Shown one piece after another: positions 2,613-55,908 of a stretch of 64,000 bases of DNA. The position numbers were made by a program, and so were the translations under genes. The first letter of the stretch is position 1. Each line of letters begins with the position of its first letter. The stretch covers positions 682,001-746,000 of the forward strand of contig LSRY02000036.1 in assembly GCA_001643675.2 (NCBI GenBank), in the 5' to 3' direction. This DNA is from Monocercomonoides exilis PA203. Taxonomy: Eukaryota > Protista > Preaxostyla. The notes under the pieces are model-generated. The model was not told the DNA's origin. It was given only the letters and a program-made list of their open reading frames with translations, and did not search any database.

Positions 2613-2648
<36 letters not shown>

Positions 2649-3400: not shown

Positions 3401-3434
<34 letters not shown>

Positions 3435-6055: not shown

Positions 6056-9000
6056 ATGCAACTTCTTGTTGTTTGCCTTGAATTTGTGATTGGTGCATGG
6101 GGAAGATGTCAACAATTTGACAAGAATGATGAACAACTCCAATGCTGGATGGGGATGCTTGAAGGAAGACAAAACAGAAACGAAGAATGCATTGTGAAGA
6201 CAATGTGCGATATGCACAACTCTTCAATGGGAGTGGAGAAAATTTGCATTTATCGATCAAGTGGAAAGTGTTCGTTTTTTGTTGGGGAACAATCTGCGCT
6301 GAGTTTTGGATGTTGCCTGCTGACTGAAAAAGGGAATTTTTCGTCTTCGACGATTTGCAATTGGGGGTTTTGTGTTTTGAGGAATTCATCGCTGATGAGC
6401 AGCTCTTGCTGTTTCTTGATGAATAGTGTTGTGGAGATGCAAAAAGCAAGTTCGTGTGTGCAGATAGAAAACTGTGAGTGGAGGAACATTGTGTTTTGTG
6501 GGAAAGGGAGCATCTTGAGGAATGGGGAAGGATTCAGCGAAGTTGCGAAAAAATGCACTTTTGCGAATGTGACTGAGATGAACAAAGCCGATGAAAAGAT
6601 GAAAAGCGAAGACTCAATCACTGAAAGCCACATGGAAGATAGCATTGTGATGAGCTCAATGAATGTGCTTGAAGGAGGGATAGCGAGTGGAACACAGGGA
6701 TCGGGAGTGTTTTTGTGCAGCAATTGCACATTTTATCACAACGAAAGAAGAGATTGGAGAATAAGGAATACAGATAGACTGTCAACAACAGAAACACAGA
6801 CATTCAAAAATGCAGAGTGGATTGAATGCAATGCCGAATGTGGTGGAGCACTGTATGTTCATGACAATTCGAGCGCAACGCTCACTGTGGAGAATTCATC
6901 TTTTGTGAAATGCAAAGCAACATCCACAAGAGGCGGCGGAATATATGCTTTGAAAATCGCTGAATGCATTGTTCATCATACAACATTTATTCAATGCTCT
7001 TGCGCATCAATTAATACAGACTGTGGCGGTGGAGGAATTACGGCAGAAAATGTGTTCACTCAATCTATCGTCGAATGCTGCAATTTTCGGAACTGTTCTT
7101 CCGGAAATGATGGAGGAGCAATTGATCTACGTCCAACAAAAACAGAAAAGCAAAAGGCATGCGTTGTGAATTCCTTTTTCGATAACTGTCAATGTTATGG
7201 ATCAGATAATGGAATTGGAGGAGCTATTCAACATTGGGGTTGCATTGATAAAGTTGTTATTTCGAATTGTCTCTTTTGTCATTGCTATTCAATTCGTGCA
7301 GGAGGAGCGGTTGGTCAACAAATAAATGAAAATAATGAAGGAATTTTGTTTTATTTCTGTTTTTTCCACAACAATGAGTGTCAAAAAGGAGGACATGACA
7401 TTGTTCTTTACAGCTCAACTTCAAATAATATCGATTCGAGTTGCTATTCGACCAGAAATACTTCAAATAGAGTTAGCACAGATACAGTCATAATTGTTGA
7501 CAAAAGTGAATGGCTTCTGAATGATGGTGGAAGAGTCAGATTTGTCTCCTCAGTGCAAACGCAACAAAATGCCAAAGATACATATGCATGTGGAATCAAC
7601 GAAAGCTATCCATGCAACACTGTTAGCCATTGCCTCACTCAACTTATTCCTGAATTTGTGAAAGATATTGAGATTCTCACAGGAACGATCATAGAAACCA
7701 AAGGTGTGGATTGTTGCTCCAACACCATCACGATTTATGGTCAAAGTGATTTGAGCACGACAGTGCAGACAGAATTAGAGGCAACTGGATTGTCTCTTTT
7801 CTCAGTCTCAACAGGTGAATTGTCCATCAGTGACCTTGAACTTGTGCATTACTCGGCATTTGCAAATAATCGAGCCTCAAGGCTATTTGAGATCACTGGA
7901 GCTGGAGAGATGCATATAAGCAATCTGAACATATCTGCTGGAAGCGAACAAACTGAAAATACAGCATTTGCTGCAGAGCTGATAAACATTCAGAATGGCG
8001 TGTTTCAGATGGAAAATGTGAACTGGGCAAAGACTATCTCCGCTGTTTCGTTGGTTTCATTTTCTTCAACAAATGAAGTGTCATTGACACTATCCGAATG
8101 CACCTTTGATGAAATTGAGAGAACTTCAAGCGGAGCAGCAGTAATGTCGTTTTCGAATGACAAGGCAATCATTGAGCTGAATTCGAGCACTTTTGAAGGA
8201 TGTGGAAGCAGAACATCTGCTGATGGAGGATCGATGATGTTGTATGCAGGAGAGGAGAATGAAGTGGAAGTGAAAGGTGGAATTTTTGATGAGTGCTATT
8301 GCTCAGTGGTGAATGGTCTTGGAGGAGGAATCCTTCTTCAGTTGTTGAATGATAATCTAAATTTCCTAATATCCTCTTCATTTGGAACAAACACAGCCAA
8401 GTGTGGAAGAGACATCTTTGTTCTTTCGCCAAATCTGGAAGAAACAACAAAGTCACAAAAAATCACGTGTGTAACAGCATCATCAGAGTCTGCTGACAGA
8501 GTGAGAGGATTCAACAACGGAAATACAACCTTGGCTGTTCCATTGTGTATTTATCTCCTTCCTGATCCAACTGAAATATTTGTGAGCGATTCAGAAGCAT
8601 TCGACCATTCGCACTGCGGAATTATAGAGTTTCCATGTCTGACTTTGAAGCACTCCCTCACACGTCAAACAGGAGAAAAGAAAGTTGTTGTGAGTGGAAT
8701 GATTTTGATGAGTGATGAATTGGCATTTGCTGGACAGAAACATGAAATCAGAGGAAATGATGATCAAAGTGGCTGGACAGTTTCTGATTCAAGTTCAACA
8801 TCCAATTCAGCGATGATTTCAGCAAGTGTTGAAACAGAATTATCAAAACTCATCTTTTCTCTTCCTTATTCCCTTTCACAGTGTTCCACTTTCATTTTGT
8901 CTTCCTCGCAACTGACTTTGTCTCAGTGCTCACTTTCTCTTCAAAATCCTTTAGAAGTATTGGAACTGTTGTTCTTGTCTGTTGAATCTGGAATCTTATC

Positions 9001-12000
9001 GATTGAAACTTTCACAGCTTCTTCGATCTCGCTGAGTGAGAATCCATTAATCTCATTATCTGGAAGCAGCACAGAAGCCAAATTGAAAAATGTTAATCTG
9101 ATTGGGATTGGAACAAGTTGTGCATCAGGATTATTTGAAGTGGTTGAAAGGGCTTCAATTCAAATGAGTGATTGTGTAATTTCTTCGATTACTCCATCAG
9201 AAGGAATAATGTCCTCTCGTTTGATCTCTTCCACAAGCGCCAAGAAAATAGAAATTATTCGATCTGGCATTTCGAACTTTGCTGTGAAAGACCAAAACGG
9301 GGGAGCAATCGAGTGCACTGTTGAAAGTGGTTGCTCTTTTGTCTTTAAAGAAGGGAGCATGAACTCGTGCAAAAGTGAGGGAGGGAATGGAGGGGGGTTG
9401 TGGGTGCAGATGAAAAGTGGATCAAGTCTTAGCATTGGCAATGTGACTGAAGAGCCTTCAAGCAAAGGAGATAAAAACGAACAAGAGGCCAAAGTGTGCT
9501 TTTCTCATTGTTCAGCAACTGCAAATGTTGATGGGAGGAAAGGATTGGGAGGAGGGATATATTTGTATCTGGATAATGGAGCATCAAATTTTGTTTTGAA
9601 GAGTATGATATTTGATGAATGTTCGGGAAGGAAAGGGAAGGATGTGTTTTTGAATGCTTTTGATTTGAGGGATGCAGCAAATTCAGCAACATTTTGCTTC
9701 GATGCTGATGTGAATGGGTTGGATAAGCTGAATGGATTTGAGCGCTCAACAACAAATGAAGAATACGAAATACCGCTTGTGGTTTATCTGTGGAATAACT
9801 TTACATCCCCTTGCCATGTGGGTGGAGAAGATGCTCATGATTTCAGTGGTTGTGGGCATGCTCAAGTTCCGTGCAGCACAATCACAAATGCGGTTGGGTT
9901 CAGATTTTCCAACAAAAACAAGTCAATCAAGCTTCATTCACCTTTTTCATTTGGAGAAGAATTGAAGATGGGTTCAAATGAGTGGAGCGTGACTGGAGAA
10001 GGAAATTCCTCAAATTATGAGATAGGAGCAGGCATTTCTGGTTCACAAAGGGGAGTATTCGAGACGCGCTGTCCAACAACCTTTGGCAAGGTGGTGTTTT
10101 CTGTTGCAGAAAGAATAGGATCATATGAAAGCATATTCCATTGCATTTCCAACAAACTGATAATTCAGGATTGTGGAATAATTGCTTCTGAAAATGACTT
10201 GGATGTTTCCTTTGTGAAGATTGAAGGAGGTGAAGTGACGATTAGCAATGTGTTTGGGATTGGGATCAAATGGCAGACAAGCGCAATAATTTGTGATGGG
10301 GGAAGTGAGGTTGTGCCTTCGATTGAAATCGGTGAAAGCAACTTTTCCGGAAACAGCGAGCAAAATGGATGTTTGATTGAATGTAAAAGTGTCAAATTTT
10401 TGAATGCAACAAAATGCGATATCACGGAGATGGATAGAGCCGCTGGATGCGGAGGATGCATAAGCGTTGACAACAGCAATATAGAAAACGAAAACATACA
10501 AATTAATATCGAAGAGTGTGTTTTTGATGGATGCTCCGTGCTGTCTGATGGAGGCAAAGGAGGAGCTATTTTCGCACAGATGAAAGGGAACACGCAATTG
10601 AATATTATTTCAAGCACATTTACGGGATGTGCAGCACCAGCTGGAGAAGCGAAGACTGGGTTTGGAGGAGGGATTGCATTGAAGTTGGTGGATGGTGATT
10701 CTTCGTTTGTGATATCATCCCCTGCTTTTGATGTTGATAATCCAAACACTGCCAAATATGGAAATGATCTTTTTGTTGAATCATCCAACTTGACAAAGAG
10801 CATCACAAACACTTCTCTTCCATTTGTTTCTGGGCATCTGGCAGATATTTCGTTGAATTCCATGAGCGGATTTGATGAGAATGACACAATAAATGCTATT
10901 CCATTGGTTTATTTCTGGCGAGCATTTGGTTCAGAGTTATTTATTGGGAGCGAAGGAAGAGATGTGTGCATTTGCGGACTGTCAGATTATCCTTGCCTGT
11001 CAATCGATTATTCTTTGGAGCGAATGCTTGAAGGAAATGAAAGGATTATCAGTGTCATTGGAAAGGCGATTCTTCAGAAGAGTGTTGATGTCAGTGGGCT
11101 TTCAATAAGATCAAATAATACAATCATGTGCGCTCTGGAGTGCAACTCTTCGCTTGAAGGAACAGAAGGAACGGCAATGAAGATTCAGGGTATTACCAAT
11201 TTCGAACTGATAAACTTTGTTGTTCCATCGTCGTTCACAAGTGGAGTTGATGTTTTGTTGCATATTGGATCAAGTGAAGGACTATTGACTCTGAAAGATT
11301 GTTCATTCAGCAAGAATGAGGAAAGCAGAGAAGAAGAAATGATTAACTTTGTGTTGATCGAGGCAGATGGGGGCATAATTGTGTTGGAATTTGTGGCAAT
11401 TCAATCGCTTTGCTTTTCAAAAGATATTATTTCCGTTCATCCAACAACAATTTTGAATATGAAAAATCTAACGATGAAGAATATTGAGCTGGAAGGAGCA
11501 AGCGGATTGGGCATGTCAAAGAGTTCAAGAAGAGAGAAAAATGAAGTGGAGCAAGATGTTGTTATTGAATGGAGTTCATTCGAAGAAGTCACTCAGAATG
11601 CAACCGATGATATCCCCATCATTCGGAATGACAATGATGAGCCATTGAAAATGGTTGTTAGAAACACAACAATGAAGAGATGCGGCGGATCGAAATGTGA
11701 AAAGGGAGGAGGGATGTTTTCTGTGTTGAATGAGGGAGGAAGAGTTGACTGCTCATTTTGCACGATTTCTGAGTGCTTCTGCTCCACCACTGGAAGAGGT
11801 GGGTGGCTGTTTCTGGAATGCACCTCGACAGCTGAGCAGCCTCTGAATTTTGTTCTGTCGAACATCACGTTCAGAGACAACTCTGCATTCAGAGGGAGAG
11901 ATGTGTATGTGAGATGCCACTCAATCGAATCGCAAATTGTTGATGAGCAATTCTTGTTGGATTTCAGATTGCCATTTGTGAAGGAGCTGGCAATATGGGG

Positions 12001-15000
12001 CTGCACAACAGACTCTTTTGTGGGTGAAGAGGATCTTCTGCTGAGGGTTGTGAAATATCAGAGCGAAACAATATTTGTCTCAGCTATCACAGACAATCAC
12101 GCAGATAGCAAACAATGTGGAGAGTTCAATGCTCCTTGCGAGTCGCTGAATGTGGGAGTGAAACATATCGTTCCATCGCGTTTCTCTCAGCTGATGATCA
12201 TGGAGCAAGCTGCTATTGTTGGTGCGTGTAGTGTTCAAGATGTTAGCATCCGCTCACTGCAATCTCCTTCATCGGCTTTTGCGTATCTGAACTCAACAAT
12301 TGCTGATGATGAAGAAAGCATCTTCACAACATCAGAGAGAGTTCGGATTGAGAATGTGAAATTCAATTTCTGTCAGTCATTTTCGTATTCAGGCAGCTCA
12401 GTCATTCGTGAAGCAAATGGCCAACTTTCTCTTTTGTTTGTTGATTTTTCATCAGTTGGACAATCAGAAAGCATTGAATCTGTTGTTCTCAATTCAACAT
12501 TGTTTAGCATCGAAAATGGAATTCTACATGTTGACAACTGCTCAATATCAATGCTTTCATCCAAGAAGCCTTCTTTCCTGTTTTGCGGGGAAGAGATATC
12601 GTTGACGAATGTGAAGTTGGAGCATATTGAGGCAACAACCAATGTATTTGAGATTGGCAACTGTGGAAGCGTTGCACTCAATGGAATAGTTGTGAATGAA
12701 GTGAAGCTGATGGAAGGATGTATCGTTTCAATAAACGATTCAACTTCAGGAACTGTTTCAATAACAATCTCCTCATTCAATAACTGTTCAAGGAATTCAG
12801 AAGGAGCTTCTATTCTTTCAGCTTCTTCTTCCTCAGCTCAGATAGTTCTTTCAAACTGTTCTTATTCAAGCTGTATTTCGAAGTCTGAGGAAGGGAGCAT
12901 GATGAAGATTGGAAATGCGATTGATGCTTCGATGCGCATGTGCGAATTTGAAGGATTGCTAACAAAAGAGAGAAAGAGTGAAAGAATAAATTCTTTTGAA
13001 GAAATATGTGAATGGAATGGATCACTTGTCCATTCATCAAATTCAACAATAGCAATGAAGGATGTTTCAATTTCGAATTCATCGTTGGGTGGATTGTCGA
13101 TCTCTTCTGGCAATGTGACGATAGAGAAAGGAGAATTCTTTGGCAACAATCCTTTCATTGCAAAATATCCATCGCTTTGTCGAAATATCATCTGCTCAGA
13201 TTCTGCTTCGCTGACCATTTCGAGCTTGAAGGGAGGAGATGGAGTAATGCCCAATTCTTCGCTGTGGATTCTGGACGATGGATGCAGCCTGGAAGGGATG
13301 GCAGGAGAAAGGGCATCGCCCTTCTTCATTCCCAAGCTGGAAGGGGCTTCGGCCAGCGAAAATGGAGGTGGGACTGAAATTCAATTCAAGGGAGCACTTC
13401 TTCTGCCATGCGATTTGTCATTCCGACTGATTTTATCAGCTGGAGAAACAGACCTGATTGAGACATATCATTTTGAAGAAGATGGGTTTGCGAGTGAAAC
13501 GGAAGCAGTTGGGATGGTGCCTTCGAGAAATCTTTCGTCGATCCCAGATGAGACGGAGGTGTCTGTGATGATTGTGTATGGAAAGCGGTTGTCTGCAACT
13601 GATGCATTTGTTCTGAAGAACAGAAGCGAACCCAAGGCAAATGGGGAGGAAAGGATTGTTGAAGGAGGAAAAGAAGGGAAATCTTATTGGTTGTTAATTG
13701 TGATTGTCATGAGTATCATATTACTAATTGTCCTTATTGGATTTATTTTATTCATTGTTCGGTGGAAGAAGGTGAAGAATGAAGCAGAAGATCTGAGAGA
13801 GATTGTGAATGATAACATCAGAAAAGATCCGAAGGCGTTTGAGATGGTGACGATGGAGATGTCGCCAGAGGAGCAGTGGAGGAGAGCAGAAAGGGAAGCA
13901 GAGAAGAAGAACGATGAGAGAATCAAGAAGAGGGTGTATGCGAAAAGCTTGGGACATTCGGAGTCATCGGAACATTTATTGAGTGAGAGTGGTTCCACTG
14001 AATACATTCTGGGCAGAGATTCAGACAAGATCCCTGATTGGGCATTAGAAAAGGTTGAGGAAGAAAAAGATGATGTTTCAAGGAAGCGAACTCCATCACC
14101 ATCAGTTTCATCCGCTTCAACCACAGACACTTCAGATACAGAATCCACTTTTGTTCGTGGGGAGGATTTGTGTCCAACCACCTCATCGATGTCGAATCTG
14201 GTGGATGCAATGGCCTGCTCTTCACCACATGAGAAATTGATTGTGGATCTGAGGGATTCGCTGTTCATGCTGCTTCATGGAAGGAATGAGAAGAAGGAGA
14301 TGGCGATAGGCACTCTGAAGGAAAGAGAGCAAACAGCTGCCCAGATTTTGTTCTGGGTGGCGAATGGGGCACTCCACTCATTTGATGAGATGGAAAACCC
14401 ACTTCAGTCATTGGCCAATCTGAGTCCTCATATTGTGCTGTTCTCTGAGCACATGGTCATCTGCATCGTGATGCATTCTGACTTGTTGTCAGATGATGAT
14501 TCAGACTCGTCTTCCATCTCATCATCAACTGTTGCAACATCTGCCAGTGATGATGATGAGGAGGAGGATGACTCTCTGCCCTCGTCTGCATTTGAGGATG
14601 AGGATGACAATTTCAAGAAGGAGTGTCTGAGGTGGAAGGCGCCAGAGCTGCAGATGAACAAGAAGATGGGGGCAACAGAGAAGTCGGTGGCATTCTCGGT
14701 CGGGATGATGCTGTGGGAGTGCCTGACACTCCAGATCCCGTTTGGGGAGTATGAGGCAGAGGCAGCTGGGCAGAAGATTGCGAATGGAGAAATGCCGAAT
14801 GTGGGGCTGGTGAAGGACACACCATATTTGGAGTTTTGGAGGCTGTGTATCTCGTGGAATGAGGCAGACAGGCCTTCTCTGAGTGGGATGAAGCGAGAGC
14901 TGATTGGGCACTTTCCAGCTGGGGCAGTGATGGTGACACTGACAGATGCAATCTGCGATTCTTTGCGAGACGAAGACGAAGAGGAAGAGGAAGAAGAGGA

Positions 15001-15082
15001 AGAAGAGGAAGAAGAGGAAGAAGATGGGATGAGCGAATCGATAAGCAAAGAAGAAGGGAGGAAAAGCCGAAAATACTTGTGA
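6056..15082 (+). CDS. Giant intronless type-I membrane receptor-like protein A (3008 aa): Cys-rich Pmp/beta-helix-like ectodomain, single TM, degenerate tyrosine-kinase-like (pseudokinase) tail, poly-Glu end
   Basis: 9-kb ORF with a hydrophobic N-terminus and repeated GGA(I/L)/GGG(I) and FxxN/FxxC motifs. Five (F/H)(V/I)(S/G)..D..CG....PC modules are present. The TM segment YWLLIVIVMSIILLIVLIGFILFIV lies at ~13685-13759. Kinase C-lobe motifs: LRWKAPE, VAFSVGMMLWECLTLQIPF, DRPS. Confidence 0.9.
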   Translation: MQLLVVCLEFVIGAWGRCQQFDKNDEQLQCWMGMLEGRQNRNEECIVKTMCDMHNSSMGVEKICIYRSSGKCSFFVGEQSALSFGCCLLTEKGNFSSSTICNWGFCVLRNSSLMSSSCCFLMNSVVEMQKASSCVQIENCEWRNIVFCGKGSILRNGEGFSEVAKKCTFANVTEMNKADEKMKSEDSITESHMEDSIVMSSMNVLEGGIASGTQGSGVFLCSNCTFYHNERRDWRIRNTDRLSTTETQTFKNAEWIECNAECGGALYVHDNSSATLTVENSSFVKCKATSTRGGGIYALKIAECIVHHTTFIQCSCASINTDCGGGGITAENVFTQSIVECCNFRNCSSGNDGGAIDLRPTKTEKQKACVVNSFFDNCQCYGSDNGIGGAIQHWGCIDKVVISNCLFCHCYSIRAGGAVGQQINENNEGILFYFCFFHNNECQKGGHDIVLYSSTSNNIDSSCYSTRNTSNRVSTDTVIIVDKSEWLLNDGGRVRFVSSVQTQQNAKDTYACGINESYPCNTVSHCLTQLIPEFVKDIEILTGTIIETKGVDCCSNTITIYGQSDLSTTVQTELEATGLSLFSVSTGELSISDLELVHYSAFANNRASRLFEITGAGEMHISNLNISAGSEQTENTAFAAELINIQNGVFQMENVNWAKTISAVSLVSFSSTNEVSLTLSECTFDEIERTSSGAAVMSFSNDKAIIELNSSTFEGCGSRTSADGGSMMLYAGEENEVEVKGGIFDECYCSVVNGLGGGILLQLLNDNLNFLISSSFGTNTAKCGRDIFVLSPNLEETTKSQKITCVTASSESADRVRGFNNGNTTLAVPLCIYLLPDPTEIFVSDSEAFDHSHCGIIEFPCLTLKHSLTRQTGEKKVVVSGMILMSDELAFAGQKHEIRGNDDQSGWTVSDSSSTSNSAMISASVETELSKLIFSLPYSLSQCSTFILSSSQLTLSQCSLSLQNPLEVLELLFLSVESGILSIETFTASSISLSENPLISLSGSSTEAKLKNVNLIGIGTSCASGLFEVVERASIQMSDCVISSITPSEGIMSSRLISSTSAKKIEIIRSGISNFAVKDQNGGAIECTVESGCSFVFKEGSMNSCKSEGGNGGGLWVQMKSGSSLSIGNVTEEPSSKGDKNEQEAKVCFSHCSATANVDGRKGLGGGIYLYLDNGASNFVLKSMIFDECSGRKGKDVFLNAFDLRDAANSATFCFDADVNGLDKLNGFERSTTNEEYEIPLVVYLWNNFTSPCHVGGEDAHDFSGCGHAQVPCSTITNAVGFRFSNKNKSIKLHSPFSFGEELKMGSNEWSVTGEGNSSNYEIGAGISGSQRGVFETRCPTTFGKVVFSVAERIGSYESIFHCISNKLIIQDCGIIASENDLDVSFVKIEGGEVTISNVFGIGIKWQTSAIICDGGSEVVPSIEIGESNFSGNSEQNGCLIECKSVKFLNATKCDITEMDRAAGCGGCISVDNSNIENENIQINIEECVFDGCSVLSDGGKGGAIFAQMKGNTQLNIISSTFTGCAAPAGEAKTGFGGGIALKLVDGDSSFVISSPAFDVDNPNTAKYGNDLFVESSNLTKSITNTSLPFVSGHLADISLNSMSGFDENDTINAIPLVYFWRAFGSELFIGSEGRDVCICGLSDYPCLSIDYSLERMLEGNERIISVIGKAILQKSVDVSGLSIRSNNTIMCALECNSSLEGTEGTAMKIQGITNFELINFVVPSSFTSGVDVLLHIGSSEGLLTLKDCSFSKNEESREEEMINFVLIEADGGIIVLEFVAIQSLCFSKDIISVHPTTILNMKNLTMKNIELEGASGLGMSKSSRREKNEVEQDVVIEWSSFEEVTQNATDDIPIIRNDNDEPLKMVVRNTTMKRCGGSKCEKGGGMFSVLNEGGRVDCSFCTISECFCSTTGRGGWLFLECTSTAEQPLNFVLSNITFRDNSAFRGRDVYVRCHSIESQIVDEQFLLDFRLPFVKELAIWGCTTDSFVGEEDLLLRVVKYQSETIFVSAITDNHADSKQCGEFNAPCESLNVGVKHIVPSRFSQLMIMEQAAIVGACSVQDVSIRSLQSPSSAFAYLNSTIADDEESIFTTSERVRIENVKFNFCQSFSYSGSSVIREANGQLSLLFVDFSSVGQSESIESVVLNSTLFSIENGILHVDNCSISMLSSKKPSFLFCGEEISLTNVKLEHIEATTNVFEIGNCGSVALNGIVVNEVKLMEGCIVSINDSTSGTVSITISSFNNCSRNSEGASILSASSSSAQIVLSNCSYSSCISKSEEGSMMKIGNAIDASMRMCEFEGLLTKERKSERINSFEEICEWNGSLVHSSNSTIAMKDVSISNSSLGGLSISSGNVTIEKGEFFGNNPFIAKYPSLCRNIICSDSASLTISSLKGGDGVMPNSSLWILDDGCSLEGMAGERASPFFIPKLEGASASENGGGTEIQFKGALLLPCDLSFRLILSAGETDLIETYHFEEDGFASETEAVGMVPSRNLSSIPDETEVSVMIVYGKRLSATDAFVLKNRSEPKANGEERIVEGGKEGKSYWLLIVIVMSIILLIVLIGFILFIVRWKKVKNEAEDLREIVNDNIRKDPKAFEMVTMEMSPEEQWRRAEREAEKKNDERIKKRVYAKSLGHSESSEHLLSESGSTEYILGRDSDKIPDWALEKVEEEKDDVSRKRTPSPSVSSASTTDTSDTESTFVRGEDLCPTTSSMSNLVDAMACSSPHEKLIVDLRDSLFMLLHGRNEKKEMAIGTLKEREQTAAQILFWVANGALHSFDEMENPLQSLANLSPHIVLFSEHMVICIVMHSDLLSDDDSDSSSISSSTVATSASDDDEEEDDSLPSSAFEDEDDNFKKECLRWKAPELQMNKKMGATEKSVAFSVGMMLWECLTLQIPFGEYEAEAAGQKIANGEMPNVGLVKDTPYLEFWRLCISWNEADRPSLSGMKRELIGHFPAGAVMVTLTDAICDSLRDEDEEEEEEEEEEEEEEEDGMSESISKEEGRKSRKYL

Positions 15083-15507
15083 TGATGATCGTATAGGTTG
15101 GCATTCTTTTGAGAAGGGCTTTCTTTGCTTTCTTCTTTGACTGTTATTCGTTGAATGGGAAGTGGAGAGCAGGATGTGAATTCTCTCAGTGAGTTCAGTC
15201 TGCTTTCCATTTTTCGACTTTCTTCGAATCAGAATCAAAATGTTTCAAAAGTGAGTTATTTTCTTTTTTCATTTTGACTTTTGTTTTCAATTTTTTGTGG
15301 AAGAGGCGTGTGTTTCATGGTGCTTTTAGCATCACCATTTTTTCTGTTAATAACAACATCAGGATAATTCTCACAAGATGAATTGCAATGAAACAGTTTC
15401 TGATATTTATTGTGAACAATTTTAAGAATATTAAACTGATACAGTCTAAATCGGACATAATCACATCGGTTTTCGCACAATTTTTTGTGACTAAATCCGA
15501 TTATTAT
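7519..15507 (+). repeat. Left arm of ~7.99-kb inverted repeat (palindrome)
   Basis: Reverse complement of 16169-24157 (paired coordinates sum to 31676), and all mirrored ORFs in the track are identical. Mismatches noticed at 11791/19885 (synonymous ACT/ACG) and 15476/16200. Confidence 0.97.
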
Positions 15508-16168
15508 AATATGTGATGTTGCTAAACATTCAAAATAATAAATAATAATTGATTTCATAGGGTGATTCATAAACCTGTATAACTGTTGATCATGAAATCT
15601 GATCGATTATTCACTATATTAATATTTTCAAAAGTTTGTTTTTGTTTTTTTGTGTAGATAATGAAATGAAAATGTTGAAATAGGAAAAATTGAATTGCAC
15701 GAATTTCTGTGTTTTGAATCTTTTAGGGTTTGAGGCACATCCACAACCCTCCTTAATTAATTTTAGGATTTCTTTTAATTAACTTTTATGCTATTCAAAA
15801 TGTGAAAATAAAAATCATATTTGAATTCTTTAATTAAAACTCAAAGACAGACGTTCCTGGCACTTCAATAAATGCAAAAATTTGTGTCTTCATTGAAAAT
15901 AAATAATTTTTTGTTTCAGAAGCAATGCTGTTTTCTCATAACCTTTAAAAGCTGCATTCTCCACGATTTTGATTATAAATGAGAACATGCGATGAATGAG
16001 TTTCTTCAAAATTTTTTACAGTTTCAACAGTTATAAAGAGATAAAAAAAAATAAAATATCAAATAAGAATATATATGTATTATTTTTGGGGTTGATCAGT
16101 AAGATACCATAATCGAAGGTCATGCCAATATTTCTGCATGTTTTTGACATAGGAATGAAAGATTTATA

Positions 16169-19100
16169 ATAATAATCGGATTTAGTCACAAAAAATTGTA
16201 CGAAAACCGATGTGATTATGTCCGATTTAGACTGTATCAGTTTAATATTCTTAAAATTGTTCACAATAAATATCAGAAACTGTTTCATTGCAATTCATCT
16301 TGTGAGAATTATCCTGATGTTGTTATTAACAGAAAAAATGGTGATGCTAAAAGCACCATGAAACACACGCCTCTTCCACAAAAAATTGAAAACAAAAGTC
16401 AAAATGAAAAAAGAAAATAACTCACTTTTGAAACATTTTGATTCTGATTCGAAGAAAGTCGAAAAATGGAAAGCAGACTGAACTCACTGAGAGAATTCAC
16501 ATCCTGCTCTCCACTTCCCATTCAACGAATAACAGTCAAAGAAGAAAGCAAAGAAAGCCCTTCTCAAAAGAATGCCAACCTATACGATCATCATCACAAG
16601 TATTTTCGGCTTTTCCTCCCTTCTTCTTTGCTTATCGATTCGCTCATCCCATCTTCTTCCTCTTCTTCCTCTTCTTCCTCTTCTTCCTCTTCCTCTTCGT
16701 CTTCGTCTCGCAAAGAATCGCAGATTGCATCTGTCAGTGTCACCATCACTGCCCCAGCTGGAAAGTGCCCAATCAGCTCTCGCTTCATCCCACTCAGAGA
16801 AGGCCTGTCTGCCTCATTCCACGAGATACACAGCCTCCAAAACTCCAAATATGGTGTGTCCTTCACCAGCCCCACATTCGGCATTTCTCCATTCGCAATC
16901 TTCTGCCCAGCTGCCTCTGCCTCATACTCCCCAAACGGGATCTGGAGTGTCAGGCACTCCCACAGCATCATCCCGACCGAGAATGCCACCGACTTCTCTG
17001 TTGCCCCCATCTTCTTGTTCATCTGCAGCTCTGGCGCCTTCCACCTCAGACACTCCTTCTTGAAATTGTCATCCTCATCCTCAAATGCAGACGAGGGCAG
17101 AGAGTCATCCTCCTCCTCATCATCATCACTGGCAGATGTTGCAACAGTTGATGATGAGATGGAAGACGAGTCTGAATCATCATCTGACAACAAGTCAGAA
17201 TGCATCACGATGCAGATGACCATGTGCTCAGAGAACAGCACAATATGAGGACTCAGATTGGCCAATGACTGAAGTGGGTTTTCCATCTCATCAAATGAGT
17301 GGAGTGCCCCATTCGCCACCCAGAACAAAATCTGGGCAGCTGTTTGCTCTCTTTCCTTCAGAGTGCCTATCGCCATCTCCTTCTTCTCATTCCTTCCATG
17401 AAGCAGCATGAACAGCGAATCCCTCAGATCCACAATCAATTTCTCATGTGGTGAAGAGCAGGCCATTGCATCCACCAGATTCGACATCGATGAGGTGGTT
17501 GGACACAAATCCTCCCCACGAACAAAAGTGGATTCTGTATCTGAAGTGTCTGTGGTTGAAGCGGATGAAACTGATGGTGATGGAGTTCGCTTCCTTGAAA
17601 CATCATCTTTTTCTTCCTCAACCTTTTCTAATGCCCAATCAGGGATCTTGTCTGAATCTCTGCCCAGAATGTATTCAGTGGAACCACTCTCACTCAATAA
17701 ATGTTCCGATGACTCCGAATGTCCCAAGCTTTTCGCATACACCCTCTTCTTGATTCTCTCATCGTTCTTCTTCTCTGCTTCCCTTTCTGCTCTCCTCCAC
17801 TGCTCCTCTGGCGACATCTCCATCGTCACCATCTCAAACGCCTTCGGATCTTTTCTGATGTTATCATTCACAATCTCTCTCAGATCTTCTGCTTCATTCT
17901 TCACCTTCTTCCACCGAACAATGAATAAAATAAATCCAATAAGGACAATTAGTAATATGATACTCATGACAATCACAATTAACAACCAATAAGATTTCCC
18001 TTCTTTTCCTCCTTCAACAATCCTTTCCTCCCCATTTGCCTTGGGTTCGCTTCTGTTCTTCAGAACAAATGCATCAGTTGCAGACAACCGCTTTCCATAC
18101 ACAATCATCACAGACACCTCCGTCTCATCTGGGATCGACGAAAGATTTCTCGAAGGCACCATCCCAACTGCTTCCGTTTCACTCGCAAACCCATCTTCTT
18201 CAAAATGATATGTCTCAATCAGGTCTGTTTCTCCAGCTGATAAAATCAGTCGGAATGACAAATCGCATGGCAGAAGAAGTGCTCCCTTGAATTGAATTTC
18301 AGTCCCACCTCCATTTTCGCTGGCCGAAGCCCCTTCCAGCTTGGGAATGAAGAAGGGCGATGCCCTTTCTCCTGCCATCCCTTCCAGGCTGCATCCATCG
18401 TCCAGAATCCACAGCGAAGAATTGGGCATTACTCCATCTCCTCCCTTCAAGCTCGAAATGGTCAGCGAAGCAGAATCTGAGCAGATGATATTTCGACAAA
18501 GCGATGGATATTTTGCAATGAAAGGATTGTTGCCAAAGAATTCTCCTTTCTCTATCGTCACATTGCCAGAAGAGATCGACAATCCACCCAACGATGAATT
18601 CGAAATTGAAACATCCTTCATTGCTATTGTTGAATTTGATGAATGGACAAGTGATCCATTCCATTCACATATTTCTTCAAAAGAATTTATTCTTTCACTC
18701 TTTCTCTCTTTTGTTAGCAATCCTTCAAATTCGCACATGCGCATCGAAGCATCAATCGCATTTCCAATCTTCATCATGCTCCCTTCCTCAGACTTCGAAA
18801 TACAGCTTGAATAAGAACAGTTTGAAAGAACTATCTGAGCTGAGGAAGAAGAAGCTGAAAGAATAGAAGCTCCTTCTGAATTCCTTGAACAGTTATTGAA
18901 TGAGGAGATTGTTATTGAAACAGTTCCTGAAGTTGAATCGTTTATTGAAACGATACATCCTTCCATCAGCTTCACTTCATTCACAACTATTCCATTGAGT
19001 GCAACGCTTCCACAGTTGCCAATCTCAAATACATTGGTTGTTGCCTCAATATGCTCCAACTTCACATTCGTCAACGATATCTCTTCCCCGCAAAACAGGA

Positions 19101-22100
19101 AAGAAGGCTTCTTGGATGAAAGCATTGATATTGAGCAGTTGTCAACATGTAGAATTCCATTTTCGATGCTAAACAATGTTGAATTGAGAACAACAGATTC
19201 AATGCTTTCTGATTGTCCAACTGATGAAAAATCAACAAACAAAAGAGAAAGTTGGCCATTTGCTTCACGAATGACTGAGCTGCCTGAATACGAAAATGAC
19301 TGACAGAAATTGAATTTCACATTCTCAATCCGAACTCTCTCTGATGTTGTGAAGATGCTTTCTTCATCATCAGCAATTGTTGAGTTCAGATACGCAAAAG
19401 CCGATGAAGGAGATTGCAGTGAGCGGATGCTAACATCTTGAACACTACACGCACCAACAATAGCAGCTTGCTCCATGATCATCAGCTGAGAGAAACGCGA
19501 TGGAACGATATGTTTCACTCCCACATTCAGCGACTCGCAAGGAGCATTGAACTCTCCACATTGTTTGCTATCTGCGTGATTGTCTGTGATAGCTGAGACA
19601 AATATTGTTTCGCTCTGATATTTCACAACCCTCAGCAGAAGATCCTCTTCACCCACAAAAGAGTCTGTTGTGCAGCCCCATATTGCCAGCTCCTTCACAA
19701 ATGGCAATCTGAAATCCAACAAGAATTGCTCATCAACAATTTGCGATTCGATTGAGTGGCATCTCACATACACATCTCTCCCTCTGAATGCAGAGTTGTC
19801 TCTGAACGTGATGTTCGACAGAACAAAATTCAGAGGCTGCTCAGCTGTCGAGGTGCATTCCAGAAACAGCCACCCACCTCTTCCCGTGGTGGAGCAGAAG
19901 CACTCAGAAATCGTGCAAAATGAGCAGTCAACTCTTCCTCCCTCATTCAACACAGAAAACATCCCTCCTCCCTTTTCACATTTCGATCCGCCGCATCTCT
20001 TCATTGTTGTGTTTCTAACAACCATTTTCAATGGCTCATCATTGTCATTCCGAATGATGGGGATATCATCGGTTGCATTCTGAGTGACTTCTTCGAATGA
20101 ACTCCATTCAATAACAACATCTTGCTCCACTTCATTTTTCTCTCTTCTTGAACTCTTTGACATGCCCAATCCGCTTGCTCCTTCCAGCTCAATATTCTTC
20201 ATCGTTAGATTTTTCATATTCAAAATTGTTGTTGGATGAACGGAAATAATATCTTTTGAAAAGCAAAGCGATTGAATTGCCACAAATTCCAACACAATTA
20301 TGCCCCCATCTGCCTCGATCAACACAAAGTTAATCATTTCTTCTTCTCTGCTTTCCTCATTCTTGCTGAATGAACAATCTTTCAGAGTCAATAGTCCTTC
20401 ACTTGATCCAATATGCAACAAAACATCAACTCCACTTGTGAACGACGATGGAACAACAAAGTTTATCAGTTCGAAATTGGTAATACCCTGAATCTTCATT
20501 GCCGTTCCTTCTGTTCCTTCAAGCGAAGAGTTGCACTCCAGAGCGCACATGATTGTATTATTTGATCTTATTGAAAGCCCACTGACATCAACACTCTTCT
20601 GAAGAATCGCCTTTCCAATGACACTGATAATCCTTTCATTTCCTTCAAGCATTCGCTCCAAAGAATAATCGATTGACAGGCAAGGATAATCTGACAGTCC
20701 GCAAATGCACACATCTCTTCCTTCGCTCCCAATAAATAACTCTGAACCAAATGCTCGCCAGAAATAAACCAATGGAATAGCATTTATTGTGTCATTCTCA
20801 TCAAATCCGCTCATGGAATTCAACGAAATATCTGCCAGATGCCCAGAAACAAATGGAAGAGAAGTGTTTGTGATGCTCTTTGTCAAGTTGGATGATTCAA
20901 CAAAAAGATCATTTCCATATTTGGCAGTGTTTGGATTATCAACATCAAAAGCAGGGGATGATATCACAAACGAAGAATCACCATCCACCAACTTCAATGC
21001 AATCCCTCCTCCAAACCCAGTCTTCGCTTCTCCAGCTGGTGCTGCACATCCCGTAAATGTGCTTGAAATAATATTCAATTGCGTGTTCCCTTTCATCTGT
21101 GCGAAAATAGCTCCTCCTTTGCCTCCATCAGACAGCACGGAGCATCCATCAAAAACACACTCTTCGATATTAATTTGTATGTTTTCGTTTTCTATATTGC
21201 TGTTGTCAACGCTTATGCATCCTCCGCATCCAGCGGCTCTATCCATCTCCGTGATATCGCATTTTGTTGCATTCAAAAATTTGACACTTTTACATTCAAT
21301 CAAACATCCATTTTGCTCGCTGTTTCCGGAAAAGTTGCTTTCACCGATTTCAATCGAAGGCACAACCTCACTTCCCCCATCACAAATTATTGCGCTTGTC
21401 TGCCATTTGATCCCAATCCCAAACACATTGCTAATCGTCACTTCACCTCCTTCAATCTTCACAAAGGAAACATCCAAGTCATTTTCAGAAGCAATTATTC
21501 CACAATCCTGAATTATCAGTTTGTTGGAAATGCAATGGAATATGCTTTCATATGATCCTATTCTTTCTGCAACAGAAAACACCACCTTGCCAAAGGTTGT
21601 TGGACAGCGCGTCTCGAATACTCCCCTTTGTGAACCAGAAATGCCTGCTCCTATCTCATAATTTGAGGAATTTCCTTCTCCAGTCACGCTCCACTCATTT
21701 GAACCCATCTTCAATTCTTCTCCAAATGAAAAAGGTGAATGAAGCTTGATTGACTTGTTTTTGTTGGAAAATCTGAACCCAACCGCATTTGTGATTGTGC
21801 TGCACGGAACTTGAGCATGCCCACAACCACTGAAATCATGAGCATCTTCTCCACCCACATGGCAAGGGGATGTAAAGTTATTCCACAGATAAACCACAAG
21901 CGGTATTTCGTATTCTTCATTTGTTGTTGAGCGCTCAAATCCATTCAGCTTATCCAACCCATTCACATCAGCATCGAAGCAAAATGTTGCTGAATTTGCT
22001 GCATCCCTCAAATCAAAAGCATTCAAAAACACATCCTTCCCTTTCCTTCCCGAACATTCATCAAATATCATACTCTTCAAAACAAAATTTGATGCTCCAT

Positions 22101-24157
22101 TATCCAGATACAAATATATCCCTCCTCCCAATCCTTTCCTCCCATCAACATTTGCAGTTGCTGAACAATGAGAAAAGCACACTTTGGCCTCTTGTTCGTT
22201 TTTATCTCCTTTGCTTGAAGGCTCTTCAGTCACATTGCCAATGCTAAGACTTGATCCACTTTTCATCTGCACCCACAACCCCCCTCCATTCCCTCCCTCA
22301 CTTTTGCACGAGTTCATGCTCCCTTCTTTAAAGACAAAAGAGCAACCACTTTCAACAGTGCACTCGATTGCTCCCCCGTTTTGGTCTTTCACAGCAAAGT
22401 TCGAAATGCCAGATCGAATAATTTCTATTTTCTTGGCGCTTGTGGAAGAGATCAAACGAGAGGACATTATTCCTTCTGATGGAGTAATCGAAGAAATTAC
22501 ACAATCACTCATTTGAATTGAAGCCCTTTCAACCACTTCAAATAATCCTGATGCACAACTTGTTCCAATCCCAATCAGATTAACATTTTTCAATTTGGCT
22601 TCTGTGCTGCTTCCAGATAATGAGATTAATGGATTCTCACTCAGCGAGATCGAAGAAGCTGTGAAAGTTTCAATCGATAAGATTCCAGATTCAACAGACA
22701 AGAACAACAGTTCCAATACTTCTAAAGGATTTTGAAGAGAAAGTGAGCACTGAGACAAAGTCAGTTGCGAGGAAGACAAAATGAAAGTGGAACACTGTGA
22801 AAGGGAATAAGGAAGAGAAAAGATGAGTTTTGATAATTCTGTTTCAACACTTGCTGAAATCATCGCTGAATTGGATGTTGAACTTGAATCAGAAACTGTC
22901 CAGCCACTTTGATCATCATTTCCTCTGATTTCATGTTTCTGTCCAGCAAATGCCAATTCATCACTCATCAAAATCATTCCACTCACAACAACTTTCTTTT
23001 CTCCTGTTTGACGTGTGAGGGAGTGCTTCAAAGTCAGACATGGAAACTCTATAATTCCGCAGTGCGAATGGTCGAATGCTTCTGAATCGCTCACAAATAT
23101 TTCAGTTGGATCAGGAAGGAGATAAATACACAATGGAACAGCCAAGGTTGTATTTCCGTTGTTGAATCCTCTCACTCTGTCAGCAGACTCTGATGATGCT
23201 GTTACACACGTGATTTTTTGTGACTTTGTTGTTTCTTCCAGATTTGGCGAAAGAACAAAGATGTCTCTTCCACACTTGGCTGTGTTTGTTCCAAATGAAG
23301 AGGATATTAGGAAATTTAGATTATCATTCAACAACTGAAGAAGGATTCCTCCTCCAAGACCATTCACCACTGAGCAATAGCACTCATCAAAAATTCCACC
23401 TTTCACTTCCACTTCATTCTCCTCTCCTGCATACAACATCATCGATCCTCCATCAGCAGATGTTCTGCTTCCACATCCTTCAAAAGTGCTCGAATTCAGC
23501 TCAATGATTGCCTTGTCATTCGAAAACGACATTACTGCTGCTCCGCTTGAAGTTCTCTCAATTTCATCAAAGGTGCATTCGGATAGTGTCAATGACACTT
23601 CATTTGTTGAAGAAAATGAAACCAACGAAACAGCGGAGATAGTCTTTGCCCAGTTCACATTTTCCATCTGAAACACGCCATTCTGAATGTTTATCAGCTC
23701 TGCAGCAAATGCTGTATTTTCAGTTTGTTCGCTTCCAGCAGATATGTTCAGATTGCTTATATGCATCTCTCCAGCTCCAGTGATCTCAAATAGCCTTGAG
23801 GCTCGATTATTTGCAAATGCCGAGTAATGCACAAGTTCAAGGTCACTGATGGACAATTCACCTGTTGAGACTGAGAAAAGAGACAATCCAGTTGCCTCTA
23901 ATTCTGTCTGCACTGTCGTGCTCAAATCACTTTGACCATAAATCGTGATGGTGTTGGAGCAACAATCCACACCTTTGGTTTCTATGATCGTTCCTGTGAG
24001 AATCTCAATATCTTTCACAAATTCAGGAATAAGTTGAGTGAGGCAATGGCTAACAGTGTTGCATGGATAGCTTTCGTTGATTCCACATGCATATGTATCT
24101 TTGGCATTTTGTTGCGTTTGCACTGAGGAGACAAATCTGACTCTTCCACCATCATTC
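16169..24157 (-). repeat. Right arm of ~7.99-kb inverted repeat (palindrome)
   Basis: Mirror of 7519-15507, with spacer 15508-16168 (661 bp). Identity breaks at 24158 (codon CGG vs CTG in DKSEWL[R/L]NDGG). Confidence 0.97.
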
Positions 24158-25707
24158 CGAAGCCATTCACTTTTATCAGTTTCTGTTGCAAAGTCTGTTG
24201 AAACTCTGTATAAAGTTTGTCTTGTTGAATAACAACTTTTGTCAATGTTGTTTTCTTTTGAAAAGTGAAGAGACAAATCATGCCCCCATCTCCCTCCAGT
24301 ATTGTTGTGAAAAAAACAATAAAAAAATAATTGGCCAAAGTTTTTTGAGTTGATCAAAACTTCAACAGCTCCACCAACTGTCAAACAGCTGCAATCACAA
24401 AACAAGCAATTTGAAATTATCACTTTGTCTGTGCAATCCCAGTGTTCAATTGCTCCTGCAGAATCTCCGATAGCACAACATTCTTTGAAGCAGGAATTAA
24501 TAATGCACGATTTTTGCTTTTCTGTATTTGTTGGCCGAAATTCAATTGCTCCACCTTCATCTCCAGATGAGCAATTGGAAAATAAGCAATCATCAACTAA
24601 TGGCTGTTTTGCATATCGCACTGTAATACCACCGCCTCCTAAGTTCGTCGAACCCTTTGCGTTACAATGATAAAAGCTTGAATGGAGCACAATGCATTCA
24701 GAAATATTCAAAGCATATATTCCTCCTCCTCTTGTGGAAGAGGCACTGCAATTTGTAAAGGTTGAATTTTCCACCTTCAAAATTGCATCTTGATTGTCAT
24801 GAACATAAAGAGCACCTCCTTGTTCAGCAGTGCAATCAGTCCATTCACATAATGAAAACGATTGGCTGACAGTCAAATTCATTTGTCCTTTTTTGTTCAG
24901 ATTATTAATCTCTCTATTCCCGTTGATTATTGTTGTGTTTTTGCAGGCAAACGCCTGAGAAGAGTACGATCCGCTCGAAATCCCTCCTTCAAAAACATTC
25001 ACTGAAGAAAAAACAAGGCAGTTTTCCATTGTGCCCAAATAGCACGAATGTTTGCTGTTAAAGCAGCTGTTCTTGCCAGATTTTACTGATATGTTGTTGA
25101 AGGCACAGTCGTTGATCTGCTCGATGTGGCACATTCCAGATGCAAGAAAGTTGTCTGATGATGAAACAATGAAATTCGAAAAAATGGAATCTCTCAAAAC
25201 AACTAAAGACAACTGATCAGATGAAGAAACAAGACTGCAGGAACGAATGTTCTTTTTGGGGATTAAACTCAGGTTTGCAAAGCATATTGACCCACTTTGT
25301 AAATCGAATGGCGAATCATATTTTTTCCAGATAGAGCATCCATTTATCTGCACACTCGCATTTTCAGATATCCGCATAAATGGCAAAGACTTTAGCTTCA
25401 GCACCAGATTTGCCAATCCAACTGAAGAGTTGAATGCTCCAAAAAAAGAATAAACTGAAGAAGATGCACATTTCTCCAATCCTTTTTCCACTGGGAAAAA
25501 ATTATTATCGATTGCCTTTGTTTTGTCCACTTCTGTGTGAAAGCGCCCATTACCTCGCTTGTTTTGATTCAGATGAGTACGGGAATAATCCAAAGATGAC
25601 TCTGAATAAGTGTCCTTCTTTGTAGATGGAGGAAATTGCATGGTGTCACGTGTATGGAAAACTGTGGTGATTATCAAACATGCAAAGAAAGATAAATGCA
25701 TGTTCAT
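16594..25707 (-). CDS. Giant intronless membrane receptor-like protein B (~3037 aa); identical to protein A from NDGGRVRF to the C-terminus, different N-terminal ~520 aa
   Basis: The track ORF 16594-25713 starts at a TTG; the first ATG is at 25707 (MNMHLSFFACLIITTVFH, signal-peptide-like). Same modules, TM (~17917-17991) and pseudokinase tail as gene A. Confidence 0.9.
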   Translation of the reverse strand: MNMHLSFFACLIITTVFHTRDTMQFPPSTKKDTYSESSLDYSRTHLNQNKRGNGRFHTEVDKTKAIDNNFFPVEKGLEKCASSSVYSFFGAFNSSVGLANLVLKLKSLPFMRISENASVQINGCSIWKKYDSPFDLQSGSICFANLSLIPKKNIRSCSLVSSSDQLSLVVLRDSIFSNFIVSSSDNFLASGMCHIEQINDCAFNNISVKSGKNSCFNSKHSCYLGTMENCLVFSSVNVFEGGISSGSYSSQAFACKNTTIINGNREINNLNKKGQMNLTVSQSFSLCEWTDCTAEQGGALYVHDNQDAILKVENSTFTNCSASSTRGGGIYALNISECIVLHSSFYHCNAKGSTNLGGGGITVRYAKQPLVDDCLFSNCSSGDEGGAIEFRPTNTEKQKSCIINSCFKECCAIGDSAGAIEHWDCTDKVIISNCLFCDCSCLTVGGAVEVLINSKNFGQLFFYCFFHNNTGGRWGHDLSLHFSKENNIDKSCYSTRQTLYRVSTDFATETDKSEWLRNDGGRVRFVSSVQTQQNAKDTYACGINESYPCNTVSHCLTQLIPEFVKDIEILTGTIIETKGVDCCSNTITIYGQSDLSTTVQTELEATGLSLFSVSTGELSISDLELVHYSAFANNRASRLFEITGAGEMHISNLNISAGSEQTENTAFAAELINIQNGVFQMENVNWAKTISAVSLVSFSSTNEVSLTLSECTFDEIERTSSGAAVMSFSNDKAIIELNSSTFEGCGSRTSADGGSMMLYAGEENEVEVKGGIFDECYCSVVNGLGGGILLQLLNDNLNFLISSSFGTNTAKCGRDIFVLSPNLEETTKSQKITCVTASSESADRVRGFNNGNTTLAVPLCIYLLPDPTEIFVSDSEAFDHSHCGIIEFPCLTLKHSLTRQTGEKKVVVSGMILMSDELAFAGQKHEIRGNDDQSGWTVSDSSSTSNSAMISASVETELSKLIFSLPYSLSQCSTFILSSSQLTLSQCSLSLQNPLEVLELLFLSVESGILSIETFTASSISLSENPLISLSGSSTEAKLKNVNLIGIGTSCASGLFEVVERASIQMSDCVISSITPSEGIMSSRLISSTSAKKIEIIRSGISNFAVKDQNGGAIECTVESGCSFVFKEGSMNSCKSEGGNGGGLWVQMKSGSSLSIGNVTEEPSSKGDKNEQEAKVCFSHCSATANVDGRKGLGGGIYLYLDNGASNFVLKSMIFDECSGRKGKDVFLNAFDLRDAANSATFCFDADVNGLDKLNGFERSTTNEEYEIPLVVYLWNNFTSPCHVGGEDAHDFSGCGHAQVPCSTITNAVGFRFSNKNKSIKLHSPFSFGEELKMGSNEWSVTGEGNSSNYEIGAGISGSQRGVFETRCPTTFGKVVFSVAERIGSYESIFHCISNKLIIQDCGIIASENDLDVSFVKIEGGEVTISNVFGIGIKWQTSAIICDGGSEVVPSIEIGESNFSGNSEQNGCLIECKSVKFLNATKCDITEMDRAAGCGGCISVDNSNIENENIQINIEECVFDGCSVLSDGGKGGAIFAQMKGNTQLNIISSTFTGCAAPAGEAKTGFGGGIALKLVDGDSSFVISSPAFDVDNPNTAKYGNDLFVESSNLTKSITNTSLPFVSGHLADISLNSMSGFDENDTINAIPLVYFWRAFGSELFIGSEGRDVCICGLSDYPCLSIDYSLERMLEGNERIISVIGKAILQKSVDVSGLSIRSNNTIMCALECNSSLEGTEGTAMKIQGITNFELINFVVPSSFTSGVDVLLHIGSSEGLLTLKDCSFSKNEESREEEMINFVLIEADGGIIVLEFVAIQSLCFSKDIISVHPTTILNMKNLTMKNIELEGASGLGMSKSSRREKNEVEQDVVIEWSSFEEVTQNATDDIPIIRNDNDEPLKMVVRNTTMKRCGGSKCEKGGGMFSVLNEGGRVDCSFCTISECFCSTTGRGGWLFLECTSTAEQPLNFVLSNITFRDNSAFRGRDVYVRCHSIESQIVDEQFLLDFRLPFVKELAIWGCTTDSFVGEEDLLLRVVKYQSETIFVSAITDNHADSKQCGEFNAPCESLNVGVKHIVPSRFSQLMIMEQAAIVGACSVQDVSIRSLQSPSSAFAYLNSTIADDEESIFTTSERVRIENVKFNFCQSFSYSGSSVIREANGQLSLLFVDFSSVGQSESIESVVLNSTLFSIENGILHVDNCSISMLSSKKPSFLFCGEEISLTNVKLEHIEATTNVFEIGNCGSVALNGIVVNEVKLMEGCIVSINDSTSGTVSITISSFNNCSRNSEGASILSASSSSAQIVLSNCSYSSCISKSEEGSMMKIGNAIDASMRMCEFEGLLTKERKSERINSFEEICEWNGSLVHSSNSTIAMKDVSISNSSLGGLSISSGNVTIEKGEFFGNNPFIAKYPSLCRNIICSDSASLTISSLKGGDGVMPNSSLWILDDGCSLEGMAGERASPFFIPKLEGASASENGGGTEIQFKGALLLPCDLSFRLILSAGETDLIETYHFEEDGFASETEAVGMVPSRNLSSIPDETEVSVMIVYGKRLSATDAFVLKNRSEPKANGEERIVEGGKEGKSYWLLIVIVMSIILLIVLIGFILFIVRWKKVKNEAEDLREIVNDNIRKDPKAFEMVTMEMSPEEQWRRAEREAEKKNDERIKKRVYAKSLGHSESSEHLLSESGSTEYILGRDSDKIPDWALEKVEEEKDDVSRKRTPSPSVSSASTTDTSDTESTFVRGEDLCPTTSSMSNLVDAMACSSPHEKLIVDLRDSLFMLLHGRNEKKEMAIGTLKEREQTAAQILFWVANGALHSFDEMENPLQSLANLSPHIVLFSEHMVICIVMHSDLLSDDDSDSSSISSSTVATSASDDDEEEDDSLPSSAFEDEDDNFKKECLRWKAPELQMNKKMGATEKSVAFSVGMMLWECLTLQIPFGEYEAEAAGQKIANGEMPNVGLVKDTPYLEFWRLCISWNEADRPSLSGMKRELIGHFPAGAVMVTLTDAICDSLRDEDEEEEEEEEEEEEEEEDGMSESISKEEGRKSRKYL

Positions 25708-44430: not shown

Positions 44431-44468
<38 letters not shown>

Positions 44469-47169: not shown

Positions 47170-55908
<8,739 letters not shown>

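Follow-up and report, generated by a model that had tools for sequence, protein, structure and literature searches.

How do two neighbouring genes come to carry one and the same body under two different heads? The question is raised by a 64-kb stretch (the window) of the genome of the gut protist Monocercomonoides exilis, in which two genes, A and B, lie tail-to-tail (convergent), each as one intact single open frame. Self-comparison of the window revealed a single dominant inverted repeat. Its arms (7498-15511 versus 16165-24178) measure 8,014 bp, are 99.94% identical without a gap and enclose a 653-bp spacer of unique sequence. The repeat begins at codon 482 of A and codon 511 of B and takes in 429 bp of 3' flank past the stop codons.

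6056-15082, forward strand: gene A, a three-part mosaic of 3,008 aa, ordered as signal-like N-terminus, head (beta-helix), stalk of five modules, single membrane helix and pseudokinase tail.
25707-16594, reverse strand: gene B, 3,037 aa; of the B-subfamily over its whole length and the source of the copied body; 92.7% identical over 10,075 bp to paralog C32:528601, flanks included.
7498-15511, forward strand: left arm, made up of the body of A, 359 bp of 3' flank common to the family and the left inverted end.
16165-24178, reverse strand: right arm; body of B.

The initial annotation had put the near-perfect repeat at 7,989 bp, slightly short of its full length, and was right that it covers the five stalk modules, the transmembrane helix, the pseudokinase tail and 3' flank (it gave about 425 bp). 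The palindromic pair, with one shared body and two different heads, is a real feature. Its structure is that of one assembly (GCA_001643675.2), and protein searches and exact look-ups, the older M. exilis protein set included, returned no model of A or B. According to the assembly paper, multi-copy regions were unevenly polished (PMC8767320). In several other identical pairs one partner bears a higher MONOS number and lacks an entry in the older set, and partners in such pairs are often frameshifted. An assembly artefact is nevertheless unlikely, and we give very little credence to a fold-back nanopore chimera or to polishing that made two bodies identical: the join lies in frame within a conserved motif, unique sequence flanks both arms and fills the spacer, and polishing is unable to make a copy out of a 50%-identical body. 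Furthermore, the head of one member of a sister pair is matched 100% by the older-set protein model P0119, and the same join was found again on other contigs.

What kind of proteins are shared in this way? Both run from a hydrophobic N-terminus through a head, five modules and one membrane helix to a tail of ~440 aa. Each module opens with a CG-x4/5-PC motif (A residues 512, 854, 1266, 1640 and 2021). In Pfam scans the whole proteins came out blank, and matches were obtained with protein pieces alone.

13691-13750, forward strand: membrane helix of A, residues about 2546-2565; hydropathy peak of 3.5 at 2546, the sole peak above 1.9.
14609-14902, forward strand: pseudokinase C-lobe of TKL type; PF07714 profile positions 162-258 only, above cut-off, E 2e-6; APE kept.

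Residues 291-440 of head B matched the right-handed beta-helix family PF13229 (33.6 bits, cut-off 25.9). An AlphaFold model consisted of all-beta rungs, with a beta-helix from residue ~85 of head B (mean pLDDT 72.5), and the closest solved folds were PL6 polysaccharide lyases and tailspikes, at weak TM-scores of ~0.2. The ectodomain is predicted to be a right-handed (pectin-lyase-like) beta-helix. The tail also matched the C-lobes of TNNI3K (E 1e-4), ILK and TAK1 in the PDB. Pfam and PDB matches span the C-lobe only, and none of the N-lobe motifs (Gly-rich loop, VAIK lysine) was found in the tail alignment. The catalytic Asp of HRD and the DFG motif are absent, the loop reading LANLSPHIV, and the catalytic motifs are equally lost in the eight most frequent variants of 176 family proteins as well as in relatives from Blattamonas. 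With no N-lobe, no catalytic Asp and no DFG, an active TKL or tyrosine kinase is ruled out. Judged by its sequence, the tail is a TKL-derived pseudokinase that kept the C-lobe (APE, helix F to I) and lost the catalytic motifs. Such a dead C-lobe would act as a scaffold or in signalling. With a long stalk that carries a beta-helix head hypervariable at outward positions, A and B most likely serve at the cell surface as receptors for recognition or adhesion, and chances are about even that their ligands are glycan or bacterial.

Distant relatives were observed inside and outside the window. The Blattamonas nauphoetae proteins P0304, P0293, P0294 and P0269 and the Logan contig P0263 (26-29% identity) have the same truncated dead kinase tail, some of them on long proteins. 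Gene E (window 57851-63562, forward strand, 1,903 aa; 21-33% identity in patches) encodes beta-helix modules, a membrane helix and a short tail without the pseudokinase. The remaining neighbours include an intact papain-family (cathepsin B-like) protease at 35817-36668 (forward strand), from a family known to be expanded in M. exilis, and housekeeping-type frames with long Ser-rich tracts (TPR, WD40, ubiquitin hydrolase-like and FKBP-like) at 33302-35638 (forward), 37659-46457 (reverse), 49221-55376 (forward) and 30382-31116 (reverse).

Comparable architectures are known. Chlamydial and trichomonad Pmp proteins carry GGA(I/L/V) and FxxN repeats and a beta-helix, in trichomonads with one membrane helix (PMC6701047), all of which have counterparts in A and B. 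The two proteins contain 12-13 GG(A/G)-hydrophobic motifs each, and Atlas look-alikes scored 0.86-0.88, but there was no match to Chlam_PMP (PF02415). Unlike Pmp proteins they possess a stalk of five Cys-capped modules and end in a pseudokinase, and Cys often stands in place of Asn. The ectodomains of Entamoeba histolytica transmembrane kinases are built of Cys-rich repeats, and their fold differs from that of A and B. The likeness is one of architecture: an expanded family in a gut protist, with a large ectodomain, a membrane helix and a TKL-like kinase (PMC2880585). In M. exilis itself, the 'protein tyrosine kinase' family is the largest, with 332 kinases (320 TKL), and overlaps unclassified repeats (PMC6759080, PMC8767320). 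These are the same genes, MONOS proteins with PF07714 matches. Neither paper describes a beta-helix ectodomain, the truncated and dead state of the kinase, or the pairing in inverted orientation and the mosaic make-up of the genes, and PMC8767320 nowhere mentions inverted arrangement, palindromes or gene conversion. Our literature search found no paper describing the architecture or the pairs of this beta-helix receptor-pseudokinase family.

To which gene did the shared body originally belong? Eleven paralogs were compared, with topology tests on nine genes. Head and upstream parts of the two genes have the following relatives:

4047-6055, forward strand: upstream region of A; A-subfamily type, 90% over about 2 kb to upstream DNA of C32:648634 and C32:866899.
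6056-6970, forward strand: A leader and first beta-helix rungs, codons 1-305; 92-94% DNA identity to C32:648634 and C32:866899, the match stopping at codon ~305.
6971-7498, forward strand: cassette V of A, codons 306-481; B-subfamily type, 56% aa identity to V of B, dS 2.6.
25708-27202, reverse strand: upstream region of B; B-subfamily type, 94% over 1,495 bp to upstream DNA of C32:528601.
24706-25707, reverse strand: B leader and first rungs, codons 1-334; dN 0.02, dS 0.05 to C32:528601.
24178-24705, reverse strand: cassette V of B, codons 335-510; 58% aa identity, dS 3.2 versus C32:528601, thus swapped relative to that closest paralog.

Grouping of the leader of A with B-type genes was rejected (AU test, p=0.037); V (p=0.036) and module 1 (p=1e-4) of A sided with the B-type. 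Separate head and body trees, a check that the initial annotation had proposed, are incongruent, with A switching subfamily at codon ~305. The A-type paralogs C32:648634 and C32:866899 reside on the same contig as A, and their own bodies are only ~50% like that of A. B differs little from C32:528601 in the leader (dS 0.05) and the stalk modules (dS 0.04-0.19). Since the upstream DNA and leader of A are A-type, its body is unlike A-type bodies and B is collinear with a B-type paralog, the body moved from B to A. Two joins are present in A, an older one near codon 305 and a recent one at 482-488, and a B-type body may have been in A already before the last event. Joins at codons 305 and 486-524 fall in the top 3-10% of identity between A-type and B-type genes, and the outer repeat end sits in one of the best-conserved islands between the subfamilies, the boundary of head and module 1. 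The recent recombinational graft suggested at the outset is supported; what the sequences show are the mosaic structure of A, B as donor, the two end points of the copied tract and the different ages of the parts.

The heads contrast with the body in age. Per 100 aa, heads A and B are 23, 22, 51, 55 and 63% identical, with dS from 1.1 to saturated and dN/dS of 0.15-0.33; the shared motifs named in the initial annotation are present, and its view of homologous yet different heads (22-63%) stands. From this divergence we read the heads as old paralogous alleles, not as sequences freshly diversified after duplication. Rapid point mutation of the heads was rejected on the same dN/dS values and saturated synonymous sites, dN/dS of the heads being a test that had also been suggested. 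A head swap as the latest event was likewise rejected: among the matches listed, no near-identical donor exists for either of the two (best 94% and 90%), and for that reason the last event copied the body, not the head. Bodies are identical only within each pair, and a body constant across the family was rejected, as family-wide identity is 62-80% per segment. The idea of a body kept uniform while the head diversifies is therefore not supported, and the heads (dS >1.1) are old.

Within the head, the ~175-aa cassette V reaches dS 0.7-3 between genes that stand mostly at dS 0.03-0.3 elsewhere, and two genes whose leaders are very unlike carry almost the same version of it. V of A has no close copy among the paralogs compared, the best 30-aa windows elsewhere being 70-87% identical. 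Among 39 proteins, V is the least conserved segment (60% versus 62-80% for others), and distances correlate poorly between segments (Spearman mostly <0.4). These patterns suggest that V is a cassette exchanged among paralogs. Its most variable columns, just after GG turns and in the loops before them, may form an outward binding face. Segment-wide dN/dS of V is 0.12-0.24, calculated from nine DNA sequences with saturated dS.

The other end of the copied tract lies at the axis of the palindrome, where we found the following element:

15442-16234, no strand assigned: MITE-like element, 793 bp, non-coding; flanked by TA left and right, with inverted ends of 70 bp that start with CAGT.
15442-15511 and 16165-16234: inverted ends of this element, 97% alike, with an inner 17-bp hairpin in each.

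The longest stop-free stretch in the element is 67 codons. With its TA target, CAGT ends and lack of coding capacity, it is probably a MITE-like transposon of the Tc1/mariner type; a search for its ends in ~260 kb of the genome returned one weak similar end (74% over 51 bp, E 0.014). The 3' flank that paralogs have in common is 361 bp long at most, and the arms run 70 bp further. Beyond the shared flank both arms read TA and then CAGT, and on neither side is there any trace of the native sequence that follows in two paralogs. This placement of the inner arm end on a TA-CAGT inverted end, with loss of the native flank, argues for one copying event rather than upkeep. By eye, 15557-15575 inside the element resembles the end of C32:833078-834081, a 1,004-bp element with 373-bp perfect inverted ends, and is perhaps a nested transposon end. 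A second inverted repeat (window 2296-3751; ~530-bp arms, 97%, poly-T/poly-A tracts, ~395-bp spacer) ends 2.3 kb upstream of A and is a fold-back element or a small palindrome.

The arms differ at five positions (7501, 7518, 11791, 15476 and 15508). Two mismatches lie in the 70-bp inverted ends and two in the outermost 21 bp; the 7.9-kb interior holds just one, which is synonymous. The inverted ends thus carry an excess over the arm (Fisher p=2e-4, post hoc). Since two of the five fall inside the 70-bp ends and one in the whole interior, the inverted ends look older than the arms. One mismatch in 7.9 kb, which may understate the age of the arms because polishing can even out near-identical sequence, fits one recent event better than long-term upkeep by conversion. 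We consider it probable that a single recent homology-guided copying event built both the palindrome and the hybrid gene A. A MITE-like element with 70-bp inverted ends would have inserted behind B, at a TA of its 3' flank. Next, a strand that had broken or stalled would have folded back, or switched template, between those inverted ends, so that flank and body of B were copied backwards for 7.9 kb. The copied strand would have rejoined the convergent relative A, in frame, at the conserved boundary of head and module 1, replacing the old body of A and the DNA between the genes; the older join at codon ~305 would already have been in A.

In yeast, short inverted repeats separated by a spacer can pair with each other where the DNA is single-stranded, and long inverted duplications start from them (PMC10164571; ODIRA, PMC4689423). 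The short spaced inverted repeats, the 70-bp ends, at the axis of A/B are alike. However, the outer end of A/B was resolved by homology in a paralog, yielding a stable hybrid gene, whereas the yeast events lead to a dicentric chromosome or a triplication.

Is the A/B pair a singular case? The family has at least 546 members, as one exact 27-base tail motif occurs at 546 loci (reversed control: 0), and the close protein matches are all MONOS proteins. Besides A/B we found six inverted pairs with an identical body and different heads, all head-to-head. In codons of A, their joins lie at ~486 (C51 and C20), ~524 (C9), 486-528 (C10), ~832 (C70) and ~827 (C32:913k/919k), and head comparisons in these pairs are approximate, as public gene models often lose N-termini or gain false introns. 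One of the six shows small clustered mismatch patches, that is, repeated short exchanges. In three identical-body pairs the head is shared as well. One of them is a 21-kb palindrome on C50 (C50:509598-530577), whose heads are identical and whose small centre is asymmetric; single-base gaps, probably polishing errors, break the frame in one of its arms. Among the first 100 motif matches, all nine neighbour pairs within about 10 kb were inverted (seven tail-to-tail, two head-to-head, none tandem; p=0.002, gene length assumed). Tail-to-tail pairs known from coordinates alone lie on C1, C6, C7, C8, C22, C27, C36 and C58. In a head-to-head pair at C32:905361-927559, both genes are without about 430 aa of stalk found in A and B. 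The same stretch is missing from most B-type genes at other loci, which means that the number of modules is variable. The expectation of head/body mosaicism in other members was thus borne out, and the six further pairs speak against a one-off duplication, which had been named beforehand as the refuting outcome. The A/B pair is best read as one instance of the module shuffling that is frequent in this very large receptor family. Such events recur, with short conserved islands at module boundaries allowing recombination between subfamilies, and leave leaders, ~175-aa cassettes, stalk modules and tails mixed across the family.

These pairs are a counterpoint to the central pivot. Because a pivot at the centre cannot give different heads in head-to-head pairs, long-tract conversion between inverted neighbours must also occur. 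The same requirement lends weight to another reading of A/B itself, an old palindrome whose arms are kept alike by repeated arm-to-arm gene conversion that starts in the tail and stops at the unlike heads. It also draws on same-contig neighbours whose likeness (97%) is confined to 1.8-2.3 kb of tail, on tails that are 92-97% alike on C32 versus 79-85% to other contigs, on the two joins of different age in A, and on an arm identity above the 99.9% mark of converted palindromes. Against it, the inner end coincides with the transposon-like inverted end, with the native flank gone on both sides, and the arms are free of patches of intermediate identity. We regard this origin of A/B as unlikely. 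Arm-to-arm conversion, initially proposed for A/B, is needed between the inverted neighbours of the head-to-head pairs; for A/B itself, the end structure favours one event. Mammalian Y and X palindromes are old and renewed by conversion. They have multi-kb arms >99.9% identical around a short spacer, as here, but the A/B palindrome appears to be young and takes in no more than a part of either gene. Exchange was also seen outside inverted pairs: two same-strand neighbours (C32:639866-641675 and 653442-655251) have unrelated ectodomains and 1.8 kb of tail 97-100% alike, so tails are exchanged between direct copies too. C32 members share a 3' flank of 260-360 bp, and their tail likeness is local homogenisation along one chromosome.

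In all seven different-head pairs the join leaves the head out, though equally conserved islands lie further in (e.g. codons 1970-1990). This may reflect selection for two binding ends, or ascertainment by near-identical bodies. A selected or dedicated diversification, in which a constant signalling body serves alternative heads for recognition, of which perhaps one is expressed at a time, would be in keeping with different heads in 7 of the 10 identical-body pairs examined, in both orientations, with joins at two boundaries, with the low conservation of V and its variability next to GG turns, and with the intact frames of both A and B. We nevertheless think it rather improbable: the joins lie in ordinary identity islands, no recombinase or signal was seen, a crossover between the arms of A/B makes no new protein, V has a dN/dS well below 1, and three pairs have the same head. 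An invertible switch was rejected, as recombination between the arms flips the spacer only. We attach a similarly small probability to an undescribed oxymonad repertoire, in which several hundred beta-helix receptor-pseudokinases would swap the ~175-aa binding cassette and bodies at fixed boundaries, with inverted neighbours as substrate, selection keeping new head/body pairings, an ongoing diversifier of somatic rate and expression restricted per cell.

Large mosaic families of surface proteins shuffled by ectopic recombination are familiar from antigenic variation (var, VSG, VSP), and in this respect the M. exilis family is of the same kind. Expression of var genes is exclusive, and they are under immune selection. 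Neither is part of the case here; M. exilis is a commensal, and its inverted neighbours copy whole bodies. In P. falciparum, var crossovers are in frame between ~63% identical paralogs, at short identity blocks and with domain order kept (PMC4270465); in-frame joins at identity blocks and a variable ectodomain with a conserved tail are common to both. In M. exilis we are dealing with a recurring recombination accident in a huge shuffled family, not with a proven antigen-switching system. While the mechanisms as such are known, the literature searched does not report them at this scale or with this anatomy in oxymonads. By these results, the members examined of the largest M. exilis family, on file as 'protein tyrosine kinases', are surface receptors of giant size whose kinase tail is truncated and dead, and they are shuffled module by module. 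The A/B locus keeps both ends of one such shuffling event, so that a route from a transposon-end pivot to rejoining at a module boundary can be read from it. It offers a commensal counterpart to the formation of var-type chimeras, and its importance would be much greater if expression were exclusive or the rate high.
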